Shown here: in pieces, positions 11,485 through 34,819 of the stretch
Numbering within the stretch: the stretch's first letter is position 1
How the letters are laid out: every line of letters begins with the position of its first letter
Assembly (NCBI RefSeq): GCF_021028975.2
Contig: NC_059439.1
Location: 36,902,901-36,954,000 of the forward strand
Reading direction: 5' to 3'
Length of the DNA: 51,100 bases
DNA from: Sphaerodactylus townsendi
Taxonomy: Eukaryota
Made by a program: the position numbers and the translations under genes
Notes under the pieces: model-generated
What the model saw: only the letters and a program-made list of their open reading frames with translations
Databases searched by the model: none
What the model was told of the DNA's origin: nothing

Positions 11485-14400
11485 TTATACGTGACTGTCC
11501 TCAGCAGGTAGGTCGCTTTCTGCTAGGAAGAATGTTGAACAAGCGTAGCCAAGAAGGGTGTAAGTCGGGTCTAGATCCTGCAAGAGATGTAGCAAAGTTT
11601 TTGTTTGGAAGCATGCCTGACGAACAGAATACAGAAATATAAGACATCCCCTGAAAATAAGACATAGCGCATCTTGGGGAGCAAAAATTAATATAAGACA
11701 CTGTCTTATATTTGGGGANNNNNNNNNNNNNNNNNNNNNNNNNNNNNNNNNNNNNNNNNNNNNNNNNNNNNNNNNNNNNNNNNNNNNNNNNNNNNNNNNN
11801 NNNNNNNNNNNNNNNNNNNNNNNNNNNNNNNNNNNNNNNNNNNNNNNNNNNNNNNNNNNNNNNNNNNNNNNNNNNNNNNNNNNNNNNCCGCCTCATATGT
11901 ATATATACACAGACATACACACATACACATATATACACATATATTCATCAAGACAGGAAGGTTGGGTACACAATCAATCTGAAACTCACTGGGAATTCAA
12001 ATTCTGCTCCGGAGTCAGCATCGTCGTTCACCTGGTTCTGTATGGCCGGGTCCCCACCTTTGGACGACACCGGTTTAGATTTGGGCAGGATCCCCCAGTC
12101 TTGGTCCACTTCTCGTGGCTTGGCTTTTTCCTGGAGTTCTAACCACAGAGCATAACGTAACTGATGCAGCTGCTTCTAAAATCGCGCATTTACCGTAACT
12201 TAGCACCCCTGGCCTTTCTCTTTAGCTGGCCTCTACGCGAAGCTCTTGGACAGAGAAGGGAATTTTCATCGGAAAGGCTGCTCAGACCCAAAAGATGCAG
12301 CGGAGGCAGGAATCCAACCGGCCCGTTTTTCTTTTTAGCAGGAGAAGAAGCAGCCCTGCTTGAATTTCTGCCTGCCGTGACTTGCTAGGGAACAAGCGAG
12401 CTATCTTGGGAATCTCACGGGAGCCAGGAATAAGAACGAGAATGGCCTGCCTGTGTCCTACTTACCTAGGTGCATTCTGCTGGGACAGTTGATTCTGAAA
12501 GGGAAAAATGACAACCACTTCAGATTGGGGAGAGAAATGGGGTAAAGTGGGAGCTAGGGGCAACCAGGCAGGGGCAGGGGCTCTTGGGGTTGCCACCCGC
12601 CATCATTATTGGTTAAGGCTGCCAACCTCCAGGTGGGGCCTGGAGATATCCCAGAACGACAATTGATCTCCAGACAAGGATCAGTTAGAAGAGAGCCAGC
12701 GTGGTGTGGTGGTTAAGAGCAGGTGCACTCTAATCTGGAGGAACTGGGTTTGATTCCCCGCCACTTGAGCTTATCTGGTGAACCAGATTAGCTTGTGCAC
12801 TCCAGCCCATGCCAGCTGGGTGACCTTGGGCTAGTCACAGTTCTTCTGAGTTCTCTCAGTTCCACCCACCTCACAGGGTGTCTGTTGTGGGGGGGGGGGA
12901 AGGGCAAGGAGATTGTAAGCCCCTTTGAGTCTCCTTACAGGAGAGAAAGGAGGGATATAAATCTTCTACTTATGCTGCCTTCAGTTCCATGGTAAAATAA
13001 ATGCATTGAGGAAATGACAGACGTAAGAAGTCCGGCTGACTTTCCTGGGTTTTCCAGGCTGTGTGGCCGGGATCTGGTAGTTTTGACCTAACGTTTCCCC
13101 TGCATCTGTGGCTGGCATCTTCAGAGGCAACATGCAAGATATGGTGACTTGCCTCTGAAAATGCCAGCTACAGACGTGAGCGAAACATTAGGAGCAAAAA
13201 CCACCAGACCACGGACACACCACCTGGAAAACCCACAGCCGCCAGCTGATTCTGGCTGCAGAAGCCTCCTGCAATATAGACGTGAGAAACCCTTGCAGGG
13301 AGAGTCCCAGGTAATTCGCCTCCTTACCGGCTCACTCCCCTGGAATGGGGACCCTTCAAGGATTTCCAGAAGGACCTGGAAGATGGAGAGGGATGGAAAA
13401 ATCAGCTCTCTTGGCCCAGTTCCTTGAAGCAGCTGGACAGCCAGAGTAGGAAACTAGGATTCTGCACTAGGAAGGAAGCCGTGTGCTTGTGGCTCTCCTG
13501 TTCCTTAGAGGGATCCGCCTCTTTTCGACCCTGTAATCCTCTGACATGAGAGGCTGTGAAATTCCCTGCGGAGGCTTCTCTGGGGAATTCAGATCAGCCT
13601 GGGCACTCCCACACACGCCAGCTGGGTGACCTTGGGCTAGTCACAGCTTCTCGGAGCTCTCTCAGCCCCACCCACCTCACAGGGTGTTTGTTGTGAGGGG
13701 GGAAGGGCAAGGAGATTGTCAGCCCCTTTGAGTCTCCTGCAGGAGTGAAAAGGGGGGATATAAATCCAAACTCTTCTTCTTCTTCTTCCTTGGCTGAAAT
13801 GCCTAGAGGGAGGGGATCCCATCCTGGGTTAAGTCCAGCACCCCAAATTCCTTCAGGGCTTGCCTTTCCCCCAACCTGTGGCTTCATTCTTGCTTACCTG
13901 GAGAGTCTCCTGCTGTTTCCTGGGGACAGAAGAGAGAAAGAAACAGCATTTTATACTGGAGGGGTTTGGCTTCTCCATCTTTCTGGGCCCCCAAAAGATC
14001 TGAAACTCCCACCTCCTGGCACCCGACTGTCCCCCTGGTGCCCCCGTCCCTGAAATACCTTTCCGTTTCTTTCTGAAGAGCCAGACGACGAACGCCAGAA
14101 ACAGCACTGCGGCACCACTGCAGCCTACCACTAGGGGGAGAAGAGAGTCTGCACACACACAAAAATGATTATTGATCGCTTGATCAGTTCAACCACACTT
14201 TGGCATCCTTCCCGCCACCCAAAATGTGACTTTCTGGTCGGTTTCCCTGGCTCCAGAGGCGTATCTAGGGAAAATGTAGCCTGGTACAAAATCTGAGTTT
14301 TCTGCACCCACCCACCCACCCCCGCCCCATATGGGCAGCCGCCCTCCTCCACCATGACCAAACGACGTCTGCAAGTCACTTGTCTTGAAGTCAGTGTATG

Positions 14401-17400
14401 GGCCTGGAGGGACGGAGGAAGGGTGTGGGGTGCGTGACTAAATGGCTGCAGGCCAAGGACATTTGACCCCATATGTCCCCCTAGGCGGTACGCCCCTGGG
14501 CGGTCCGTCCTCCAGACTCCACAGCTCCCTGGCATGTTGGGTTCCTTTCTGATAACAGCACAAAGCATCCCCTGACTTGGGGTGCTGTGTGGTTTCCGGG
14601 CTGCATGGCCGTGTTCTAGCAGCATCCTCTCCTGACGTTTCGCCTGCATCTGTGGCTGGCATCTTCAGAGGATCTGATAGTAGGAATGGAAAGCAAGTGG
14701 AGTATATATACTGCGAGGTCAAAAGGTGAGGCCCTCTGAATGGAGTAGCCTGGCATGTGAGTCACAAAGAAGTCTGTAGCCTGGGAGTGACAATGAAGAT
14801 AGCAAGGTCAATAGGTGAATGCATCTGAATAGAACAGCCATTCTCAACCAGGGTTCCGTGGTACCCTGGGGTGCCGTGAGCATGTCCCAGGGGTACGGTG
14901 GCAACACTACCGCCCCCCCTCATTTTTGTGGTGACTCCCACCGGCGCCAGCAAGTACATGGAGCTGGCCCATGGGACAGGGCCTGCCATAAGGTCAGCAC
15001 CCCCCCCCCCCCGTGCTTACCTTCACCCTGGGAGGGGAAGGTGGGGTGTGTGGCAAGCAGGGGCAGTAGGAGGGGAAGGTGGAGGGTGGCGGCAGGGGTA
15101 CCATGAGATATGAAGAGTGAGGTCAAGGGTACCCTGACCTCGAAAAGGTTGGGAAGCACTGGAATAGAAGTATCCTGATCTTTGTTTCCTTTGTTTGCTA
15201 TTGTCTATAGTTGTTATGTTTTTGGGTGGAGCTGATCAGTCACTGTCTTGATTTTAGAGTTTTTCAACACTGGCAGCCAAATTCTGTTCATTTTCATGGT
15301 TTCTCCCTTCCTTCAATAGCAATCAAAGGAAACAAAGACCAGGATACTTCTATTCAGATGCATTCACCTATTGACCTTGCCATCTTCATTGTTACTCCCA
15401 GGCTACAGACTTCTTTGTGACTCACATACCAGGCCACTCTATTCAGAGGGCCTCACCTTTTGACCTCACAGTATATATACTCCACTTGCTTTCCATTCCT
15501 TCTATCAGATCCTCTGAAGATGCCAGCCACAGATGCAGGCGAAACGTCAGGAGAGAATGATGCTAGAACACGGCCAGTCAGCCCAGAAACCACACAGCAC
15601 CCCAGGGATTCCGGCCGTGAAGGCCTTCGACAATACATCCCCTGACTTCTCCCTTGGCAAAGGGTGCCACCCTCCAGCTGGTGGCTGGAGATCTTGCTAT
15701 TACAACCGCTCTCTGGGCGACAGAGACCTTGGAGGGCCAGGTTGGTTTGGAAGGGGGATGCCAGGGCAAGAAACGGAAGAAGAAATTCTTATTGTTGCTA
15801 TACCAAGAGGTTGTGTGCCATTTTCATTTTTAGCCTCGGATGCTGTCGTCGGCTGTGAGGCTGATCTGGGGCCGCCGCTGCTCGTGAATGGCGTTGCGGA
15901 GTCCGGAAAAGGGCTGATGCTGCTGGATACTCCGACGTGGGATGTAGTTCTGGAAAAGTTGGGCACAAAGGACTCGGTTGCTGCGCCGGTGATGGGAAAC
16001 GCAGAAAGAACCTCAGAGCATGTTGACTGTGAAGAGCTGGGCGGGGAGGTTGCTGGTCTGTCAGGTCCGGCGGAGGGGGAGCTCTCCTCCGTAACCGGGT
16101 GGGATGAGGTGACTTGTAAAGGCGATGTGGTTGCAGCTGCAGGAGATCTGGTGACTCTCCTTTTGCTTCCATGGGTGTGAGCGTCCGGGACAGCGGTGGA
16201 GGAGTCTGGTCCTGTGACAGTTGGAGGAACGGAAGAAAGAACCACAGAGCACCAAGATTAGGAGGAGGAGGAGGAGGAGTTTGGATTTCTATCCCCCCTT
16301 TCTCTCCTGCAGGAGACTCAAAGGGGCTGACAATCTCCTTGCCCTTCCCCCCTCACAGCAAACACCCTGTGAGGTGGGTGGGGCTGAGAGAGCTCCGAGA
16401 AGCTGTGACTAGCCCAAGGTCACCCAGCTGGCGTGTGCGGGAGTGCCCAGGCTAATCTGAATTCCCCAGATAAGCCTCCACAGCTCAGGCGGGAGAGCTG
16501 GGAATCAAACCCGGTTCCTCCAGATTAGATACACGAGCTCTTAACCTCCTATGCCACTGCTGCTCCCAGTGGCGTAGAAAGGATTTCTATGTGGTTATCC
16601 CTCCCCTTGGCAGATTCTCTCTAAATCAGTGGTTCTCAACTTTCCTAAAGCCACGACCCTGTAATACAGTTCCTCATGTTGTGGTGACCCCCAACGCTAA
16701 CATTTATCCATTTTACAGATGGAGAACACTGATGCAGAGAGTCTTAGGCGACCCCTGTGAAAGGGTCGTTCGACCCCCAAAGGGGTCGCGACCCCCAGGT
16801 TGAGAACCGCTGCTCTAGATCATCACATTTAGCCAGAAATGCCCTCCCCCACCACGACCAAACATCTTTTTTTGCACCAGGTGTTGAAGTCAGTGTATGG
16901 ACTCGGGGGGAAGGAGGAGGGGTGTGGGGTGCGATTTTCCACCCCCCCCCCATGTGACTGAATGCAGTCTGGGGACATTGGATCCCGTATGTCCGCCCCC
17001 GTCTCCATCCCTTCCATGTGCTTGCACTTGTTGCTCAAGTTCCAGAACTGCTTTCTATGGGGATGGAGAATATTCCATCCCGTCCTATTTCACATGCCGT
17101 CTTTGCTTGTTGATAAGCTGTTTTGAACTCCTGTGCCCCAGGCGTCTCTTCTCTACTCTTCTCCTGCTTAGCTCTCGCTGTCCCCTCTTCTCAAAAGACT
17201 CGAGGTCTCTTATCCTCTAAGCCCCAGGCCACAAATGCTAGCCACTGATTCGCTCCCTTTGCTTCCCTTCCAGCTCATGAACGTGCCCTTCAAATAAACT
17301 GATATCAATAAACAGGGCCTTACCCATCACAGAAATATGGGTGTTGTTGCTTTTCGTCGACTGGATCTCCCGCCCAGATTCCACAACATGATATGTACAG

Positions 17401-20400
17401 GAATACCTTCCACTGTCTTGCGGTGAGAGGCGTAACGTGTACGTGTTCCTGTTCGGAGAGGATGAGAGTTGGTGGGGTTCATGCAGGCGCCGGTCGTCTT
17501 TATGAAACATGATCTTTGTCACAGGACGACTGTCAGAAACCGAGCATGTGAAGTTTATGAACTCCCCGCTTCTGTAGACCTCTCGCTTTGGGGACACAGA
17601 AAGGACCGGGGTACGGAGGCGCTCTGAGAAGGAAAGCAGAAAGGTATGGAGAAAAAAACCCACAGGCCAGGGAAAGCAAATTTCAACGGTTAACTTCACC
17701 CTTAATACAGAATCATAGAGTTGGAAGAGACCCCTAAGGGCCATCCAGTCCAACCCCCTGCCATGCAGGAACACACAATCAAAGCACTCCCGACATATGT
17801 TCATCCAGCCTCTGTTTAAAAACCTCCAAAGAAGGAGACTCCACCACTCTCCGAGGCAGTACCTTCCACTGCCGAACAGCCCTGACTGTCAGGAAGTTCT
17901 TCATAATGTTTAGGTGGAATCTCTTTTCCTTCCCCTTGAACCCATGACTCCTGGTCCTGGTCTCTGGAGCAGCAGAAAACAAGCTTGCTCCCTCCCCAAC
18001 ATGACATCCCTTCAGATATCTAAACATCGTGGCTGTCATGTAACCTCTTAACCTTCTCTTCCCCAAACTAAAGTTCTTCCTAATGTTTGGAATCTCTGTC
18101 TGCACCTTGCATATGAAGGGAGCTCTGACTCTCGAAAGCTTATATCTCGGAAATCTCATGTGTCTCTCTCGGGTGTTGCTGGACTCTAATCCAGCACGAG
18201 TATCCCTGTTGCAGGACCGAATCTGAAGCACTCCTACATTCAACAATGACGCGGCTGGCCTCCACACGGCCAGGGCCTTTACAGCTCTGGCACCGGCCTG
18301 GTGGAACACACTACCACCAGCTGTCCGGGCCCTGCGGGACCTTGGAGAATTCCGCAGGGCCTGTAAGACTGAACTGTTCCACCGGGCCTTTGGAGAGTCC
18401 AGCCACTGATAGTGCCTCTGCCCCCCCCTCCCCCTCTGCTACAGGGTCCCCTAACATCATTGGGACTCATTTCTTTTCTGGGGAGGGTTGGATATGGATT
18501 TCGTGGGGTGCTATTTTTAGAACATAACTGTTTTAAATTGTATGTTATATAGACGATTTTATGTTGTTCACTGCCCTGAGCCCTTCGGGGATAGGGCGGT
18601 ATACTAAATTTAATAAATAAATAAAATAAAATAAATAATAAATAACAAAGCACTCAATAGACCTCTCCCATTAACAGACAAAATCTTGCTCACTTGTCAC
18701 AGCTACAGAGACGAGGCCGCTGTGCGGGGACCAGATCTCCTGTTCGGAAAGCAGCGTCCAGTAGGTGCAGCTGTACTTCCCAGCAGTGTTTTGGGACACC
18801 TTGAATGTTTTATAGGGCCCTTGGCCTGTAGAGGGGAGCTCCTTGAAGGTCTGGTCTCGCTGTTCTTTGTAAAAGACGTATCCGGCCGCCTCTACCTCCT
18901 CTGGAGCAGAACAAGTCAGGGTGACTTTTTCCCCTTGGAGGTACACGGGATACTCTGGATCCAGGGAAAGGGCTGCCGGTTGGAGCTCTGGGATTGCAGG
19001 GAAAATATATATTTTAAAAGTTTGGGATTAATTCCATGAAATCAGTTTTTCAAGTCAGAAGCTGGGACACAGCAAAAGAATAAGTACAATATAAAACCAT
19101 ATTTATTTTTATTTTTATTTTATTTATTTATTATTTCTATAAAAAATAAATAAAAATTATTTCTTGAATTTGTAGACCGCCCCATCCCCGGGGGGCTCTG
19201 GGCGGTGCACAACAATATTCATTGCAATCAGTAAATTATTAAACCAATAAAATCTATTAAAATCTATTAAAAGCAGCGGTCAGTACAGAGATATCAGGCA
19301 CCCCAAAAACCAATTTAATTAGAGGCCTCCCTAAGGAAAGGGAACGGCCGGACTCCCCTCTAAGAGGATAGCATATGGTGGTAATCGAATATAGAGAGGG
19401 GGGCGCACATATAAGCAACAGCAATGTACTGTGTGTTTGTTCCTTAGGGAAACAAGTGCCTGGCGAAGCACTTTGTTGGACTGCTTAATATACTCTGTAT
19501 ATAGTTACTTGTACATATAGCAACTCAATGGTAAAAGCCTTCTTTTGAAAGAAACAGCTGTGTGGAGTTTTTCTTCTTGAAGGTGGGAGTCTGCTGTATA
19601 TGTCCACTTGTCTACTTTGAGTAGTACCGCTCAAGTCTGCTATCAGTTGTCACCATTCTGAATGGATGAAAGAACTACTGCAAGGGAAAGAAAAAACTTC
19701 CCTCCCTCCCTGTTGTCACTTCTGTAATAAGCTGGAAATGATATCACACAGTGGTGGGATCCAAAAATTTTAGTAACAGGTTCCCATGGTGGTGGGGTTC
19801 AAACTGTGGCATAGCGCCAATGAGGCTGGGTGGGGCATGACCTGGGCGTGGCCAGTCATTCTGGGGGCGGGGCATTCCTGGGCTTGGGCAGGAAACGAAT
19901 GCACGCAGGCGCAGGCTGCCACGCACGCCGGTGCACCTCCTGCTAGACTGCTTCATGTTCTGCGCGCTGCTGCTGAGAGGAGGGGCGTAACTAAGGCCAA
20001 AATTACGTGGCAAAATCACCAATTAGTCGCCCCCTCACGGCACACACAAATAATTAGTAACCCACTTTCGGGAACCTGTGAGAACCTGCTGGATCCCACC
20101 TCTGATAACACACCCAGGTGATGCTCTGGTATACCCACAAAACTAGGAATGCCAGAGCATCCACTCCACTGCACGGTTGTATCACTTCCGGGTCACACTG
20201 GAAGTGATGGCATTATGCTGGGGGTGCTGATAACCCCCTCTCCAACCGTGAGCCCCCACCTCCCCCACCGCCTGTAAAGGGACAGGCAGTGCCTCGCCCC
20301 CCTAGGAACATTCCTCACCAGTGATGGTGACCTCACGATGGTCACTTTGTGCAGACTGAACAGGTACTCCCGCATCATTTTTTCCTTTGTAAACACAGAT

Positions 20401-23400
20401 GAATGTATTCTGCGGTTCCAGGTGTGCTGTGGAGATCTCCCAGCTGTCTTCTTGCTGCTGTCTCTGCAGGGCCCATTTACCACCTGGCGTCATTTTATAG
20501 AACAGGAATTCCTCTGCCCTCTGCCTTTCCGGTGGGGTGCAGTTCAATCGGAGCTTCTCTCCTCGGATAAAAATATGATGCAGAGGGACCAGGGACAGCC
20601 TGGGTGCTGGAGGAGGTGGACTCCCAGGTGTTGGGTGGGGTCCTGAGAAAGGAAAGCAGACGCCAGATTGGACCTGTTTCTTCTGCTCTGCTCCTGGAAC
20701 TAGGACTTCCCAACGAGCAGTAGATCGACAGCTCTGACGGCAGAGAATTCAGTTCTCCGTAAATGTTTTTTTTAATTAAACACTTTATTGAATAGTTAAA
20801 ATGTGTTACAACAATAAGTCATACATGTTATACATAAATTTTTAAAAAATTATATATGTTATACATACTTCTTTCGTACAATCAGCAATACTTTCTATAA
20901 CCTTTTTCTTTGGTTCTCCCTGAATGGGAGTATTTATTTGCCGAGTAATTAATTAAGGCTTCTCTTCCCAGATACCCTATCTATCCTATAAACATATTAA
21001 CGCAAAGTTTAACAGACAGAGCTTCACTTGAATAGCATTATGCTACTAACTTTGAAAACATTAAATAATAAATTTATCTATCTCAATTCCCTCTTTTTTT
21101 GGAAGGAAAAAAAAACGTTAGAAGTGTCCATATGTTCTCTCTCACCTTCGTATCTTCTTCCTGTAAAGACAACGTAAAATGTAAAAAAAAAAAAAAGTTC
21201 TCCGTAAATGTCGAACACGCACATTGTGCCCGTTCCAGGCTAGCGTGCCAACTTCCTGCTGGTACCCAAACATCTCCCCCCAGACCCCACTTCTCACCTC
21301 CTCCCCCACTGCTTTGCAAGGAGACAGGGTGTTCTTTGCAACCCTAGGAACGTTCCTCACCGGCGACGGCGACCACGCGATCGTCACTTTGTGCAGACAG
21401 GACAGGCTCTCCCGCATCGTTTTCTCCTTTATAAAGACAGATGAATGTATTCTGCGGCTCCAGGTGTTCTGTGGAGACCTCCCAGGTGTCTTCTTGCTGC
21501 TGGGTCTGCAGGGCCCATTTGCCCCCATTTTCCACCCATTTGTAGAACAGGAATTCCACGGGCCTCTGCCATTTCGGCGGGGTGCAGGTCAACCGGAACT
21601 TCTCTCCTCGAGTAAAAATATCACGCAGAGGGAGCAGGGACAGTGTTGGAGGAGGTGGACTCACAGGTGTTGGCTGGGCACCTGAGAAAAGAAAGGAGAT
21701 GCCAGGAGCAGCACTGGCGTAGGAGGTTAAGAGCTCTGGAGGAACCGGGTTTGATTCCCCGCTCTGCCGCCTGAGCTGTGGCTTATCTGGGGAATTCAGA
21801 TTAGCCTGTACACTCCCACACATGCCAGCTGGGTGACCTTGGGCTAGTCACAGCTTCTCGGAGCTCTCTCAGCCCCACCCACCTCACAGGGTGTTTGTTG
21901 TGAGCGGGGAAGGGCAAGGAGATTGTCAGCCCCTTTGAGTCTCCTGCAGGAGAGAAAGGGGGGATATAAATCCAAACTACTACTACTACTCCTCCAGATC
22001 AGACCTGTTTCTTTTGCTCTGCTCCTGGAACTGGGACTTCCCAACGAGCAGGAGATTGACAGCTCCTAGGGCCGAGAATTCAATACGGAGGATTCAATTC
22101 TCCATAAATGTTGAATGCACACAGTGGGCCCATTCCAGACTAAATGCCTATTTTGGAACAACATGGGCACACTTGGCTTTTGTCTCTCTGACTGAGGAGG
22201 TCAGATGACACTGGACGTGGCTGGCTGGCAGTTGGACCCAGACCTCTTGTCGTCTTCTGCTCCCGCACTCTCCTGTACTTAAACTACTCTGTTGCCTGTT
22301 TGTTTATAAAAGATCTTTCGGTTCCCGTTCCTTTCTTCCTTTTTGGAACTTCTTCTGCAATCTGTCTCCTTTTTCCCAACCACAGCAGAGGTGGGATCCA
22401 GCAGGTTCTCACAGGTTCCCGAGAGTAGGTTTTAATGATTTGTGTGTGCCGAGAGGGGGTGACTAATGGGTGATTTTGCCAGAGTGATTTTTGCCTTAGT
22501 TACGCCCCTCCTCTCAGCAGTAGCGCGCAGAACTTGAAGCAGTCCAGCAGGAGGTGCACCAGCGTGCGTGGCAGCCTGTGCCTGTGTGCATTCGTTTCCC
22601 GCCCAAGGACCGGTGCAGCGGCTGCGTCCTTGCCACAGCCCCGCCCAGGAATGCCCCGCCCCCGGAATGCCCGGCCATGCCCCCATCGTGCCCCGCCCCG
22701 CCCAGCCTCATTGGTGCTACGCCACAGTTTGAATCCCACCACCATGGGAACCTGTTACTAAAAATTTTGGATCCCACCACTGAACCACAGCCTTCTTTTC
22801 TATTGCCACCCCTGCTTATCTAATATTCACGGTACACCTCGGGGTCAAAACTGGCAACAGAAACTGCCTCACCGCTCAGAATCACAGGCGGACAAACAGA
22901 AATAAAATATTTCCTGGCAGGAGATGTAATGTTTCCTCTGTGGAGTTCTGCAAAGCATTTAGCCCAAAACGTTTTGTTTCCAGCCTGAAAACATTTCACT
23001 TGCATGCTGTTTCCCAGCGATTCTTTGGTGACACCATTTTGAAAACGTTTTTACTTCCTGTGCGATCTCTTTAAGACATTTCCCACACCTCCTGGACTTC
23101 CTCACCAGTGATCATTTCTGAGATCGCACCAGCTGCCTGGCGCTGTATTTTCACCAGTTTTTTTTTAATTTCTGGGGTCGTGTCCAGAGGTGGGATCCAA
23201 CCAGTTCTCACCACTTCTCTAGAAGTGGTTACGAATTTTTTCTGAGTGCCGAGAAGGGGTTACTAAAGCAACCTCCCTGCCCAATAGGGACTGGAGGCGC
23301 GCGTGTGCGGCGGCGCCACTGTTTGAATCCCACCACCGTCGGAACCTGTTATTAAATTTTTTGGATCCCACCACTGGCGTGTCTTTGTAGCTTTGAAGAC

Positions 23401-24929
23401 ACAACCCCCAGAGAATCGCAGCGTGAGACTTTGAAGCGTTGTAGCAATGGAAAAAAAACACAAAATGGCAGCCAAGAATCGTTTCGAGGGGGGGAGTGCA
23501 AAGAAATGGGGTGGGGTTTGAAAATGTTTGCAAAACGTTTCAGGGGCTTGTGTGAAAAGGGCCAAGGAGAGGTTGACCACCATCCTAGTTGGCCATTTCT
23601 CCATTTCTGGATTACATAGAGGCAATGGTGGGATCCAAAAAATTTAGTAACAGGTTCCCATGGTGGTGGGATTCAAGCAGTGGCGTAATGCCAATGGGGT
23701 TGGGTGGGCCACGACGGGTCGTGGCCGGGCATTCTGGGGGCAGGGCATTAATAATTTCTGTAAAAAACTCTTACCGTAAAAAAAAAGTTCCTAATTTCCA
23801 GCTGGTATCTTTCTGTCCATAATTTAAACTCATTCTAGCAAGTCCTATCGTCTACTGCCAACAGAAACAACGACTTCTCCTCTAATTGACTGCCTGTCAA
23901 ATACTTAATACTTTCAAATACTTAATTTTGTTTCTAGAAATCAAAAGAAGGATACTTTCCTTAAACAAGGAACTTTACCATCTTTCTGAAACATGTTTTC
24001 AAAACAGCCCAACAGGGAGAATTATGCCGTTTTCTACCTTCGCTAACCAGCCACATAGGAAACAATAGGACTTTATGATTTTTGGACCTAATGGCATTTC
24101 TAACGGAAAAGCAGACCCAGTTAGTAACCCCCTCTCGGCACACACAAATAATTAGCAACCCACTCTCGGGAACTGGTGAGAACCTGCTGGATCCCACCTC
24201 TGCATAGAGGCCCCTGATTGTACTGATCGTGGCCGAGGGTGCGTGGGGCCGTGGGGGGTGGGGAAGGTATTCATTGTTTTCAACTCAGAATTGAAAGAAT
24301 TGTCTTGTTACCTGCGTCAGGTACCAGCCAGGAAGCAGCTGAGACTGAAGCTGGAAGAGAAGGGAACAGAAGAGAGCGCTTATGAAAACACAGAGTGAGT
24401 AATCTGATTGTTTGATTGGTCCGGGCTGAAAAGTTGCATTGTCCCGTGGGCACAATTATGATCCATTCTGTGTATGATCCTAAAATCCACCCAGAGGAGA
24501 GCCTTGGCTACTGCAAGATGTAATGTGCTGCCATCAGCTCTGCTGGAGGGAAGATTTAAGAACATGGAACGTTCTAATAAAAGAGTTTGCTCATGTGATA
24601 GGACTACGGTTGAAACACTTGACCATTCTCTGTTTCTATGCCCTAAATACAATAAGATACGCATGAAATACATGAATTCCATTTTCTTGCAATGTTCTCA
24701 GTGGCAAGAGTGTTATAAGAGACCCAATCTCCTGAACAGCTCTGATGTGCTCTTTTGTGAAACTGTTGCCAATTTTATATTGGAAATTAGTAGTTTTAAC
24801 TGCATTTCTTAACCTTGTTTTGTTTTAAAATTTTGTCCTGTTTTATATGCCAATAAAGGCTTGTGTTGTTGTATGATCCTAAAATAAAATTACTTGCAAA
24901 CAACTACTGTCCCTGCTCCCTGGTTGTGT

Positions 24930-24966
<37 letters not shown>

Positions 24967-26803
24967 TTTCATCACTACTGTTAAATATTATGGGTATATA
25001 CTTAAATGCTTTTAATGCCTTGTTTAAGGAGCAGTAGTGGTGTAGGAGGTTAAGAGCTCGTGTATCTAATCTGGAGGAACCGGGTTTGATTCCCAGCTCT
25101 GCCGCCTGAGCTGTGGAGGCTTCTCTGGGGAATTCAGATTAGCCAAGGCACTCCCACACACGCCAGCTGGGTGACCTTGGGCTAGTCACAGCTTCTCGGA
25201 GCTCTCTCAGTCCCACCTACCTCACAGGGTGTTTGTTGTGAGGGGGGAAGGGCAAGGAGATTGTAAGCCCCTTTGAGTCTCCTGCAGGAGAGAAAGGGGG
25301 GATATAAATCCAAACTCTTCTTCTTCTTGCTGTTGTTAGCTGCCTCGTAAGTCACCATAGTACACCACTGATCAGGTGTAACAGTCCACCTACAAGTCAG
25401 TTCAATATTCTCTTTCTCACATTAAGGCATAAAAGGGGGTGATTTCCAGATTTTAGCCCATTCATTTCTAGGTTCCTTTCCCCCAGATCCGTTTCCCAAG
25501 CTTTTGTCTTTCTCACTTCTCTTTTCCACTGGAATAAATTTTATGACAACAGCAGCCTTTAAAATGTGTAGCTCTGTATTGAACCAATTAATTAAAAGGA
25601 GTCGAGCCTCCATCTAGTTGATTTTTAAGACATGGGGATTAACAGAAATGAGCCACCAAAGCAGAATTCAGTTCACAGAAGACTGAAATGCTGCGAGAAA
25701 CTGCAAAGCCCATTTGACCTCAGAGCGCAGAAGAACGTTTAAAAAGATGATTAAATGTACCCGCACCACAGACAAGGAGAACAGCATAACACTGTTCTCA
25801 AACCTCTAAACAGCCTCTGCTGTTTGTTAACAATCACAGAGCATGTGCAAAGTGCAAAGTTTTGCAATTAGAACTGTTTCAGTTGTAGGAAACAATGCAG
25901 CATCCCGCTAAAAGAAGAATTTGTTATCTAGGGGGAGAGGGTCTCCACTCCCATTTTCAGCCCACAAGTCTTGCTCAGCCCCATACCTGCAACCTTCCCA
26001 GTCCCCTTCTTCTATAATATGGGGTAATAATACTGGTCTACCCTGAAGGGCTGTGGTGAGAATTAAAATGTGACAGTGTGCAGGAATAGTTTTGAACGCA
26101 GACATGGCTAAGCGAAGTGGGTTGAACGCAACCACCTTTTCCAGTAGTGGGAAAAGAGAAGGGGTCTCCACTGACCAGCCAAAAGAGGCTTAGAAGCAGC
26201 AGTGGCGTAGGAGGTTAAGAGCTCGTGTATCTAATCTGGAGGAACCGGGTTTGATTCCCAGCTCTGCCGCCTGAGCTGTGGAGGCTGATCTGGGGAATTC
26301 AGATTAGCCTGTGCACTCCCACACACGCCAGCTGGGTGACCTTGGGCTAGTCACAGCTTCTCGGAGCTCTCTCAGCCCCACCTACCTCACAGGGTGTTTG
26401 TGGTGAGGGGGGAAGGGCAAGGAGATTGTCAGCCCCTTTGAGTCTCCTGCAGGAGAGAAAGGGGGGATATANNNNNNNNNNNNNNNNNNNNNNNNNNNNN
26501 NNNNNNNNNNNNNNNNNNNNNNNNNNNNNNNNNNNNNNNNNNNNNNNNNNNNNNNNNNNNNNNNNNNNNNNNNNNNNNNNNNNNNNNNNNNNNNNNNNNN
26601 NNNNNNNNNNNNNNNNNNNGGGAATTGGGCTTGGTTGTGTTAAAAAGCTAGCGGGATCCAGCCCAATGTCATGATTATATATATAAATAGGGGGCAAACA
26701 GGGAAGGAAAGGGTGCCAAGGGAAGAGCCAGGAAAAGGAGAGGGGTGAAAGGGAGAGGAACATCCTTACCCCATAGCAGAAAGAGACGACCCAAGCGCTC
26801 CAT
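11485..26803 (-). CDS. Uncharacterised type I Ig-superfamily receptor (LRC/A1BG/Fc-receptor-like), ~716 aa. Exons: 26803-26770 (S1), 24350-24312 (S2), 21681-21361 (Ig1), 20642-20319 (Ig2), 18987-18694 (Ig3), 17623-17324 (Ig4), 16211-15804 (S/T/P stalk), 14148-14059 (TM), 13919-13898, 13375-13328, 12494-12466, 12138-11990, 11577-11485 (cytoplasmic)
   Basis: All 13 exons have AG/GT boundaries and sum to 2151 nt (716 codons plus stop) with no internal stop. Signal peptide MERLGRLFLLWASVSAASWLVPDA; four phase-1 Ig exons with paired Cys (e.g. GEKVTLTC...AGKYSCTY); hydrophobic LLPLVVGCSGAAVLFLAFVVWLF followed by RKKRK. Ectodomain and TM exons are well supported; cytoplasmic exons less so. Confidence 0.8.
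11589..11718. mobile_element. Tc1/mariner (Tc2/pogo-like) MITE, partial, running into an N gap
   Basis: Homologous to the right half of the complete copy at 47833-48065. Confidence 0.7.
12692..12965 (+). mobile_element. tRNA-derived SINE (Squam3-like)
   Basis: A/B-box head and SINE body. Confidence 0.75.
13033..13278. mobile_element. Short inverted Penelope-like element fragment with degenerate hammerhead motifs
   Basis: Inverted arms related to the 14579-15635 element (ctgaagatgccagccacagatgcaggggaaacgttagg on the minus strand). Confidence 0.65.
13565..13788 (+). mobile_element. tRNA-derived SINE (Squam3-like), 5'-truncated
   Basis: Body plus (CTT)n tail. Confidence 0.8.
14630..14672 (-). 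ncRNA. Minimal type I hammerhead ribozyme motif (Penelope-associated), sense to the Ig receptor pre-mRNA
   Basis: tcct-CTGAAGA-tgcc...ggc-GAAA-cgTC-agga: complete catalytic core, stem I tcct/agga, stem II gcc/ggc, GUC cleavage triplet. Confidence 0.65.
14835..15161. mobile_element. hAT MITE nested in the Penelope arm
   Basis: TIRs cagccattctcaacc / ggttgggaagcactg; perfect 8-bp TSD gaatagaa. Confidence 0.8.
15510..15552 (+). ncRNA. Minimal type I hammerhead ribozyme motif (second arm)
   Basis: tcctCTGAAGAtgccagccacagatgcaggcGAAAcgTCagga; predicted cleavage after 15548. Confidence 0.65.
16260..16565 (-). mobile_element. tRNA-derived SINE (Squam3-like) with (CCT)n tail
   Basis: Same consensus. 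Confidence 0.85.
16627..16812. mobile_element. hAT-Charlie MITE (SPIN/URR1-like)
   Basis: TIRs cagtggttctcaac / gttgagaaccgctg; internal ...taatacagttcctcatgttgtggtgacccccaac...; TSD ctctaaat/ctctagat. Confidence 0.8.
17706..18075 (-). mobile_element. CR1 LINE 3' end
   Basis: Translation SLGKRRLRG...FRYLKG...RTRSHGFK...FLTVRAVRQW..LPRRVVESPSLEVFKQRLD; (ATTCTRTG)n tail. Confidence 0.9.
18215..18645 (+). mobile_element. L2 LINE 3' end
   Basis: Reads AFTALAPAWWNTLPPAVRALRDLGEFRRACKTELFHRAF; 3' stem-loop gccctgagcccttcggggatagggc and (TAAA)n tail. Confidence 0.8.
19749..20104. mobile_element. hAT MITE, cagtggtgggatcc family, copy 1
   Basis: TIRs cagtggtgggatcc / ggatcccacctctg; TSD atatcaca/ataacaca. 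Confidence 0.8.
20767..21195 (-). mobile_element. AT-rich retroposed insertion (probable L1/Tx1-type 3' end)
   Basis: 16-bp TSD agttctccgtaaatgt at 20751-20766 and 21196-21211; AATAAA and poly(A) on the minus strand; absent from the paralogous duplicated intron at ~22095-22110. Confidence 0.7.
21705..21992 (+). mobile_element. tRNA-derived SINE (Squam3-like) with (CTA)n tail
   Basis: Same consensus; lies ~25 nt from the Ig1 acceptor and is absent from the Ig2 paralogous intron. Confidence 0.85.
22386..22782. mobile_element. hAT MITE, cagtggtgggatcc family, copy 2
   Basis: TIRs; perfect TSD aaccacag. Confidence 0.85.
23185..23376. mobile_element. hAT MITE, cagtggtgggatcc family, short copy 3
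   Basis: TIRs cagaggtgggatcc / ggatcccaccactg; imperfect TSD. Confidence 0.75.
23623..24202. mobile_element. hAT MITE, cagtggtgggatcc family, long copy 4
   Basis: TIRs; perfect TSD catagagg. Confidence 0.85.
24487..24869 (+). mobile_element. 5'-truncated RTEX-like LINE 3' end
   Basis: QRRALATARCNVLPSALLEGRF...RVCSC...ETLDHSLFLCPKY; atgccaataaagg end; 16-bp TSD tgtatgatcctaaaat at 24471-24486 and 24870-24885. Confidence 0.8.
24934..24962. repeat. (GT)n microsatellite
   Basis: Seen directly. Confidence 0.9.
25028..25328 (+). mobile_element. tRNA-derived SINE (Squam3-like), full length
   Basis: Same consensus. Confidence 0.85.
26195..26471 (+). mobile_element. tRNA-derived SINE (Squam3-like), tail in an N gap
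   Basis: Same consensus. Confidence 0.85.

Positions 26804-34417: not shown

Positions 34418-34819
<402 letters not shown>

Follow-up and report, generated by a model that had tools for sequence, protein, structure and literature searches.

A CIDEB-linked immunoglobulin-type receptor gene in the gecko Sphaerodactylus townsendi and its conserved cytoplasmic tyrosine block

The genome of the gecko Sphaerodactylus townsendi carries a 13-exon gene for an immunoglobulin (Ig)-type receptor in a stretch of 51,100 nucleotides that we call the window (contig NC_059439.1, positions 36,902,901 to 36,954,000; all coordinates below count from its first letter). The gene runs on the minus strand from 26803 to 11485 and corresponds to LOC125445118, an 'uncharacterized protein'. 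We conclude that it is probably the intact gecko orthologue of a type I receptor that sauropsids carry directly upstream of CIDEB, that this receptor probably belongs to the superfamily uniting the FcR/FCRL genes and the leukocyte receptor complex (LRC), and that it would signal or be sorted through its own cytoplasmic tail. This reading is supported by an open exon model, identity to database proteins, synteny with CIDEB and NOP9, an exon plan shared among orthologues, conservation of the tail, a fixed order of Ig domain types and an AlphaFold2 prediction.

We located the exons from splice context on the minus strand, independently of the model given in a preliminary description of this stretch. 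As that description had claimed, 13 exons join into one frame (2151 nucleotides, 716 codons, a single terminal stop); all introns are GT-AG, and the second leader exon and the Ig, stalk and transmembrane (TM) exons are phase 1-1. All Ig-like open reading frame (ORF) pieces within 11485-26803 likewise lie on the minus strand. The joined 716-residue model was used for the frame check alone, while searches took single exons or one of three database proteins, which a library-wide HMMER search with the first Ig exon had recovered: P0138 (UniRef, 633 residues), P0139 (LOC125445118 isoform X2) and P0005 (isoform X3). These three match residue for residue across every exon, so the exons go beyond chance. 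The same matches mean that the gene model is not a discovery: the preliminary description had treated the gene as unnamed, and it was already annotated in both RefSeq and GenBank, though uncharacterized. Ab initio enumeration by itself left the small cytoplasmic exons ambiguous, and only the database proteins settled them.

The leader is split into 34 and 39 nucleotides, as predicted, with support from splice context and from P0138 and P0139. Exon 1 (L1; 26803-26770, 34 nucleotides) holds the ATG, the residues MERLGRLFLLW plus one nucleotide and the donor GTAAGG, and is identical to residues 1-11 of both proteins. Exon 2 (L2; 24350-24312) is a phase 1-1 mini-exon of 39 nucleotides, ASVSAASWLVPDA, present in both proteins and preceded by the top polypyrimidine tract in a scan of 39-nucleotide candidates; the full signal peptide reads MERLGRLFLLWASVSAASWLVPDA. 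Four phase 1-1 Ig exons follow: exon 3 (Ig1; 21681-21361), a divergent 'type 1' domain with the motif FLFYK that is skipped in RefSeq isoform X2; exon 4 (Ig2; 20642-20319), a tandem copy of Ig1; exon 5 (Ig3; 18987-18694), a 'type 3' domain with GYVFYKE; and exon 6 (Ig4; 17623-17324), the membrane-proximal 'type 4' domain with IMFHK. The F in place of W in the C strand was therefore correctly described. The S-x-x-S ending proposed for the G strand is present too, but its final V fails in Ig4, which has I.

Exon 7 (16211-15804) encodes the entire mucin-like stalk in 408 nucleotides (136 residues), with an alternative internal acceptor at 15982, and exon 8 (14148-14059), with an alternative acceptor at 14130, encodes the TM segment SLLPLVVGCSGAAVLFLAFVVWLF, which has no charged residue and is followed by the stop-transfer sequence RKKRK. 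This sequence opens the tail, about 113 residues from five small exons: exon 9 (c1; 13919-13898), 22 nucleotides encoding NSRRLS and placed by database proteins and splice context; exon 10 (c2; 13375-13328), 48 nucleotides encoding SFWKSLKGPHSRGVSR; exon 11 (c3; 12494-12466), 29 nucleotides; exon 12 (c4; 12138-11990), 149 nucleotides encoding QDWGILPKSK and DADSGAEFEFP; and exon 13 (11577-11485), which reads DLDPTYTLLGYACSTFF...SHV, encodes DLDPTYTLL and ends in the stop TAA. The Ser/Thr/Pro stalk, uncharged TM segment and DPTYTLL tail of the preliminary description were thus all found in the joined frame.

The database models differ from ours, and from one another, at several splice sites. 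In P0138 and P0005 the stalk exon begins at the internal acceptor 15982, which costs 76 residues; isoform X2 has the full stalk exon and skips Ig1 and Ig2. Eublepharis and Gekko retain coding sequence for the first half of this exon, so we regard the long stalk form as genuine. All three S. townsendi models begin the TM exon at 14130, 18 nucleotides downstream of 14148. Both acceptors are in frame; the residues 'SLLPL' are retained in the homologues of Eublepharis, Podarcis, Hemicordylus and turtles, and we therefore favor 14148.

Two introns contain assembly gaps, one at 26472-26619 in intron 1, between L1 (26770) and L2 (24350), and one at 11719-11887 in the last intron. The joins that span them (L1 to L2, and c4 to the last exon) are those found in the S. 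townsendi database proteins, and the latter join, between ...EFEFP and DLDPTY..., is contiguous in orthologues at gap-free loci, where the intron measures 95-950 nucleotides. For these reasons, neither gap hides an exon. DNA contigs end at 11614 and restart at 11946 amid depth in the millions, which places the second gap within high-copy repeat sequence.

The position of the gene is conserved. Downstream of it lie ORFs for the CIDE-N exons of CIDEB (7045-7365 and 8292-8657, minus strand) and a NOP9-like ORF (1619-2134, plus strand). Upstream is a histone cluster of two H2B, one H4 and one H3 (34418-34819, 35827-36144 and 39250-39642 on the plus strand, 40838-41248 on the minus strand), in which the H3 gene is interrupted by an assembly gap (40849-41064). 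Positional orthologues directly upstream of CIDEB(-NOP9), in the same orientation, are present in the geckos Paroedura picta and Eublepharis macularius and the amphisbaenian Rhineura floridana, as the preliminary description had proposed to check in other squamates, and outside squamates at the same CIDEB(-NOP9) position in the turtles Emydura macquarii and Mauremys mutica and in Alligator mississippiensis. A histone gene lies upstream of the Paroedura orthologue too. Because these orthologues span lepidosaurs, turtles and crocodilians, the gene is at least as old as their common ancestor, and the earlier label 'lineage-specific' does not hold. In humans, LTB4R2 flanks CIDEB, and no Ig gene is known at that position.

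Members of this CIDEB-linked group share an exon plan as well as a location. From gecko to alligator, c1 is kept at about 22 nucleotides, c2 at 48, c4 at about 149, and the stalk occupies a single exon; the orthologues whose tails were mapped, those of Paroedura, Rhineura, Emydura and alligator, all have a c1-sized exon and a 48-nucleotide c2. The order of domain types (type 1, type 3, type 4) is fixed among orthologues, and the middle type is expandable: turtle orthologues keep the tail, have no stalk exon and carry many type 3 Ig domains in its place. Three features together define the group, and the S. townsendi gene has them all: it lies directly upstream of CIDEB, its tail comes from five exons and carries QDWGxLPK and DPTYxLL....STF, and its domain types follow the order 1-3-4.

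Automatic pipelines have scattered this one gene over many names. Orthologues appear as 'uncharacterized protein', 'MUC18-like', IGSF1-like or, in alligator, 'mucin-2', a name also given to a relative in Varanus; across cryptodire, pleurodire, sea and softshell turtles the name is 'Fc receptor-like protein 5'. We found no published paper describing a CIDEB-linked Ig receptor gene. What is new here, besides the conserved tail block, is that a single conserved and so far undescribed receptor gene stands behind several conflicting database names. FCRL5, mucin-2, MUC18-like, IGSF1-like and 'uncharacterized' become a single gene that its position, exon plan and tail motif define in a stable way, and this gene offers a single-copy positional anchor for a superfamily whose non-mammalian evolution is blurred by rapid birth-and-death.

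We propose that the product is a type I membrane glycoprotein in which a signal peptide is followed by a type 1 Ig domain (duplicated in S. townsendi and optionally spliced out), one type 3 and one type 4 domain, the stalk, an uncharged TM helix and the tail of about 113 residues from five small exons. Adaptor-coupled activating receptors combine a charged TM residue (NxxR, Arg or Lys) with a short tail; neither feature was found here. Lacking a charge in its TM segment, the receptor would not pair with adaptors bearing the immunoreceptor tyrosine-based activation motif (ITAM) and would act through its own tail. Platelet glycoprotein VI (GPVI), like other receptors with Ig domains and a mucin stalk, is among its closest known counterparts. 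It resembles the gecko receptor in carrying Ig domains of the LRC/FcR fold on a Ser/Thr/Pro-rich stalk before a single TM segment, and its D1D2 pair superposes on the predicted gecko pair with Z about 12. The TM segment of GPVI contains an Arg, and GPVI signals through FcR-gamma, whereas the gecko receptor has an uncharged TM segment and a long, conserved tail.

Conservation in the tail centers on two short blocks. In alignments of three geckos, an amphisbaenian, a turtle and alligator, the D.(3)LPK core of the c4 block QDWGxLPK is invariant in all six species, with the W and G of the block kept everywhere except in Paroedura. In the last exon, with the consensus (I/L)DPTY(T/S)LL....STF, the Y, LL and STF are invariant from gecko to alligator. 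We suspect that these blocks, QDWGxLPK ... (I/L)DPTYxLL....STF, form the business end of the tail. By analogy, they may act as an NPxY-like/YxxL tyrosine motif that recruits phosphotyrosine-binding (PTB)- or Src homology 2 (SH2)-domain proteins or AP-2, with ligand-triggered signalling and/or internalization as the putative outcome, and not classical inhibition through an immunoreceptor tyrosine-based inhibitory motif (ITIM). The NPxYxxL signals of the LRP1 tail are similar in that (N/D)PxY and YxxL overlap in DPTYTLL, whose Y and LL are invariant across sauropsids; they differ in having Asn where the gecko tail has Asp and in belonging to an unrelated protein family, so that the likeness is one of analogy only. 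A conserved non-ITIM tyrosine block of this kind is directly testable. A word-indexed search with the gecko tail returned the same gene and Lerista only, and an ESM Atlas search with it gave no usable match.

Several observations weigh against this reading. DPTYTLL, the sole YxxL in the tail, does not fit the ITIM consensus (S/I/V/L)-x-Y-x-x-(I/V/L), having Pro at -2, nor does it fit ITAM or the immunoreceptor tyrosine-based switch motif (ITSM), and with Asp for the Asn of NPxY, recruitment of PTB proteins or AP-2 would follow by analogy only. The sequence DADSGAEFEFP, common to squamates and turtles, is absent in alligator. Many relatives have a second, distal tyrosine (HTYSEIL in Lerista, HIYSEI in Hemicordylus, HLYEETL in Paroedura, EPVY in turtle and alligator), and this motif of other squamates is missing in S. 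townsendi, whose stop TAA (11485-11490) aligns with the distal-tyrosine codon of Paroedura; Eublepharis has Glu there. Because S. townsendi stops at this point and Eublepharis has Glu, the alignment indicates that the distal motif has been lost in two of three geckos and that it is dispensable in geckos. Finally, the four sequencing runs that carry the locus, found with the stalk exon and compared over 11450-17440, are genomic DNA, collinear with the introns and free of splice joints.

That only genomic runs carry the locus, that a stop codon cuts off the distal tyrosine motif, and that RefSeq isoform X3 begins at an internal Met and has no signal peptide would all fit a decaying or non-expressed gene in S. 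townsendi whose open frame is fortuitous. We find this scarcely credible. Each of the 13 exons stays open and has canonical splice sites, RefSeq models several isoforms, and gecko and alligator share both exon sizes and tail motifs. Furthermore, in DNA from a sister species, three of the four exonic differences are synonymous (codon positions were assigned by hand from exon phases).

In the ectodomain of what we take to be an intact receptor, Ig3 and Ig4 are clear Ig domains (Pfam Ig_2, E 2e-11 and 1e-12), while Ig1 and Ig2 barely register (E about 0.1; Ig_3 for Ig1, E 0.075). A search with the Ig1 exon found 135 relatives in a library of 1.84 billion proteins, the best of them from squamates. 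AlphaFold2, given 25 homologues, modelled the Ig3-Ig4 pair with a predicted local distance difference test (pLDDT) above 90 and the TM segment as a helix, and left the stalk and tail disordered. Ig1 and Ig2 share 71% amino acid identity, and their exons are 82% identical over 395 nucleotides, including about 60 nucleotides of downstream intron. Because this high DNA identity reaches into flanking intron, it points to a recent tandem exon duplication. Rhineura also has two near-identical type 1 Ig exons (L002:10530-10688 and 11440-11760), and their duplication appears independent of that in Sphaerodactylus.

The stalk is 49% Ser, Thr and Pro over its 136 residues and contains N-glycosylation sites. 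It is probably O-glycosylated and would hold the Ig domains off the membrane. It is not the oddity that had been supposed, since alligator also has a single-exon mucin stalk (417 nucleotides, against 408 in the gecko). Such a long, disordered and glycosylatable segment raises the question of whether the protein is chiefly an adhesion or barrier molecule in the style of MAdCAM-1, CD34 or TIM, with a tail that serves only for anchoring or sorting; the 'mucin-2' names in alligator and Varanus, the uncharged TM segment and the lack of a canonical ITIM or ITAM agree with this. We nevertheless judge it distinctly improbable, given that turtles keep the gene and its tail without the stalk exon, having many Ig domains instead, and that conservation is strongest in the cytoplasmic tyrosine block and not in the stalk.

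For family placement, we ran profiles of the three Ig domain types against PDB sequences. Human FCRL5 was the top match for all three, through summation over its nine domains. Per domain, the Ig3-type profile scored 26.2 bits on LILRB1 D1, 25.8 on FCRL5 domain 4 and 23.3 on LILRB2 D1. The Ig4-type profile scored about 40 bits on Fc-epsilon-RI alpha D1, above the two-domain LILR chains, and the Ig1-type profile 43 bits on FCRL4 (two domains) and 38 bits on CHIR-AB1 (one domain). The nearest folds to the predicted Ig3-Ig4 pair were LILRB2 D1D2 (Z 14.1, 184 residues, rmsd 9.6) and the FcgRII fold, represented by FcgRIIa (Z 12.8, 160 residues, rmsd 16.7), so that the predicted pair leans slightly to LILR/LRC geometry.

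Leader lengths speak to the same question. LRC leaders are split into 34 and 36 nucleotides; our search of the literature on the LRC leader and reptile FCRL genes gave no citable statement of this rule. In FcR/FCRL genes the split signal peptide follows a 30/21-nucleotide rule (PMC2413239). The lengths are 34 and 39 nucleotides in Sphaerodactylus and Eublepharis, with a 39-nucleotide L2 also in Paroedura (L1 was not found there), and 31 and 57 in Emydura, so neither rule holds across the orthologue group.

Given these similarities, the gene could be a member of the LRC family (LILR/KIR/CHIR/GPVI/A1BG) that was translocated out of the LRC and works like an inhibitory LILR. LILRB1 and LILRB2 are likewise type I proteins with several phase 1-1 C2 Ig exons, a split leader with a 34-nucleotide first part, an uncharged TM segment and a multi-exon tail with YxxL. 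The gecko leader has a 34-nucleotide L1 and an L2 close to the 36-nucleotide class, the C strands have F or Y and not W, and to the LILRB1/2 D1 and CHIR-AB1 matches is added the best two-domain superposition, on LILRB2. On the other hand, the gecko L2 has 39 nucleotides and not 36, the turtle orthologue does not share this leader, the gecko gene has a single 408-nucleotide mucin stalk exon and no canonical ITIM, the Ig3 profile does as well on FCRL5, and Ig4 is closer to Fc-epsilon-RI D1 than to LILR. The difference in Z between LILRB2 and FcgRIIa is only about 1.3, with a high rmsd for both families. The LRC is framed by TTYH1/LENG8/RPS9/CNOT3/PRPF31 (PMC6557307), none of which lies nearby: here and in the six other sauropsids, the gene has CIDEB-NOP9 as one neighbor and histone genes as the other. 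It thus lies outside the canonical cluster, as the preliminary description had said. Altogether, we consider a translocated LRC gene rather unlikely. The earlier interpretation of the gene is only partly right. The 34 + 39 leader of geckos and the slight structural lean toward LILR stand, but an LRC/A1BG relationship is unproven, the leader varies, Ig3 ties with FCRL5, and the tail is not a classical ITIM tail.

An FcR/FCRL-family gene that works like an FCRL, binding Ig or another ligand under tyrosine-based regulation, is the counterpart of this proposal, and we regard it as unlikely. It would account for FCRL5 as the top PDB sequence match with all three profiles, for the Ig4 score on Fc-epsilon-RI D1, and for the fixed N-to-C order of domain types with an expandable middle type, as in FCRLs. 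Five exons encode the gecko tail, and the tails of XFL proteins span one to five (PMC2413239). The Emydura L1 of 31 nucleotides comes near the 30/21 rule, and the NCBI pipeline calls the turtle orthologues 'Fc receptor-like protein 5'. The gene also adjoins a histone cluster, and human FCGR1A lies beside the histone cluster at 1q21. However, summation over nine domains inflates the totals for FCRL5, whose best single-domain score, 25.8 bits, is no better than that of LILR. L2 is never 21 nucleotides (39 in three geckos, 57 in the turtle), the C strands are without the W of classical FcR domains, the neighborhood is a different one, and the predicted fold leans to LILR. As for the turtle names, Guselnikov and colleagues caution that automatic names can mislead in the FcR/LRC families (PMC6557307).

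We infer that this is a member of the FcR/FCRL-LRC superfamily, whose genes encode C2-type Ig receptors, and assign it to neither branch, because the per-domain scores tie, neither leader rule holds and automatic names are unreliable. A third placement, which we advance tentatively as a possibility and no further, is that the CIDEB-linked gene represents a separate, ancient sauropsid branch, sister to or predating the LRC/FCRL split and absent from this position in mammals, with an undescribed tyrosine motif, (I/L)DPTYxLL....STF plus QDWGxLPK. If so, these two blocks would define a signalling or sorting module that is new among immune-type receptors.

Beyond the orthologue group, we looked at the nearest relative in Xenopus tropicalis (P0144). 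A seven-transmembrane gene beside it was at first taken for a candidate LTB4R; in PDB this neighbor matched GPR4/OGR1 best, with BLT1 at only 35 bits, and the candidate was dropped. This PDB matching of the neighboring gene showed no link between the P0144 locus and the CIDEB block. In Paroedura picta, a second Ig gene of 407 residues with type-4-like domains lies between the histone gene and the orthologue (L001:4851-8387); the S. townsendi window holds no counterpart.

Many introns of the S. townsendi gene contain copies of one interspersed repeat (12791-12934, 13640-13828, 16221-16412, 21844-22044, 25185-25421 and 26347-26470), which reads ...RRLKGADNLLALPPSQQTPCEVGGAERAPRSCD in one frame and has contig depth in the millions, indicating a very high copy number. 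High-copy repeat fills the intron that separates the stalk exon from the TM exon (14250-15650), with internal inverted joints in the DNA contigs. Divergence from the sister species (run X4) is uneven along the gene: there is one difference in 676 bases over 15609-16284, which covers the stalk exon and flanking intron, and 5-6% divergence in neighboring intron and exon pieces (12415-14282). A shared haplotype, introgression or the choice of contig are possible reasons for this pattern.

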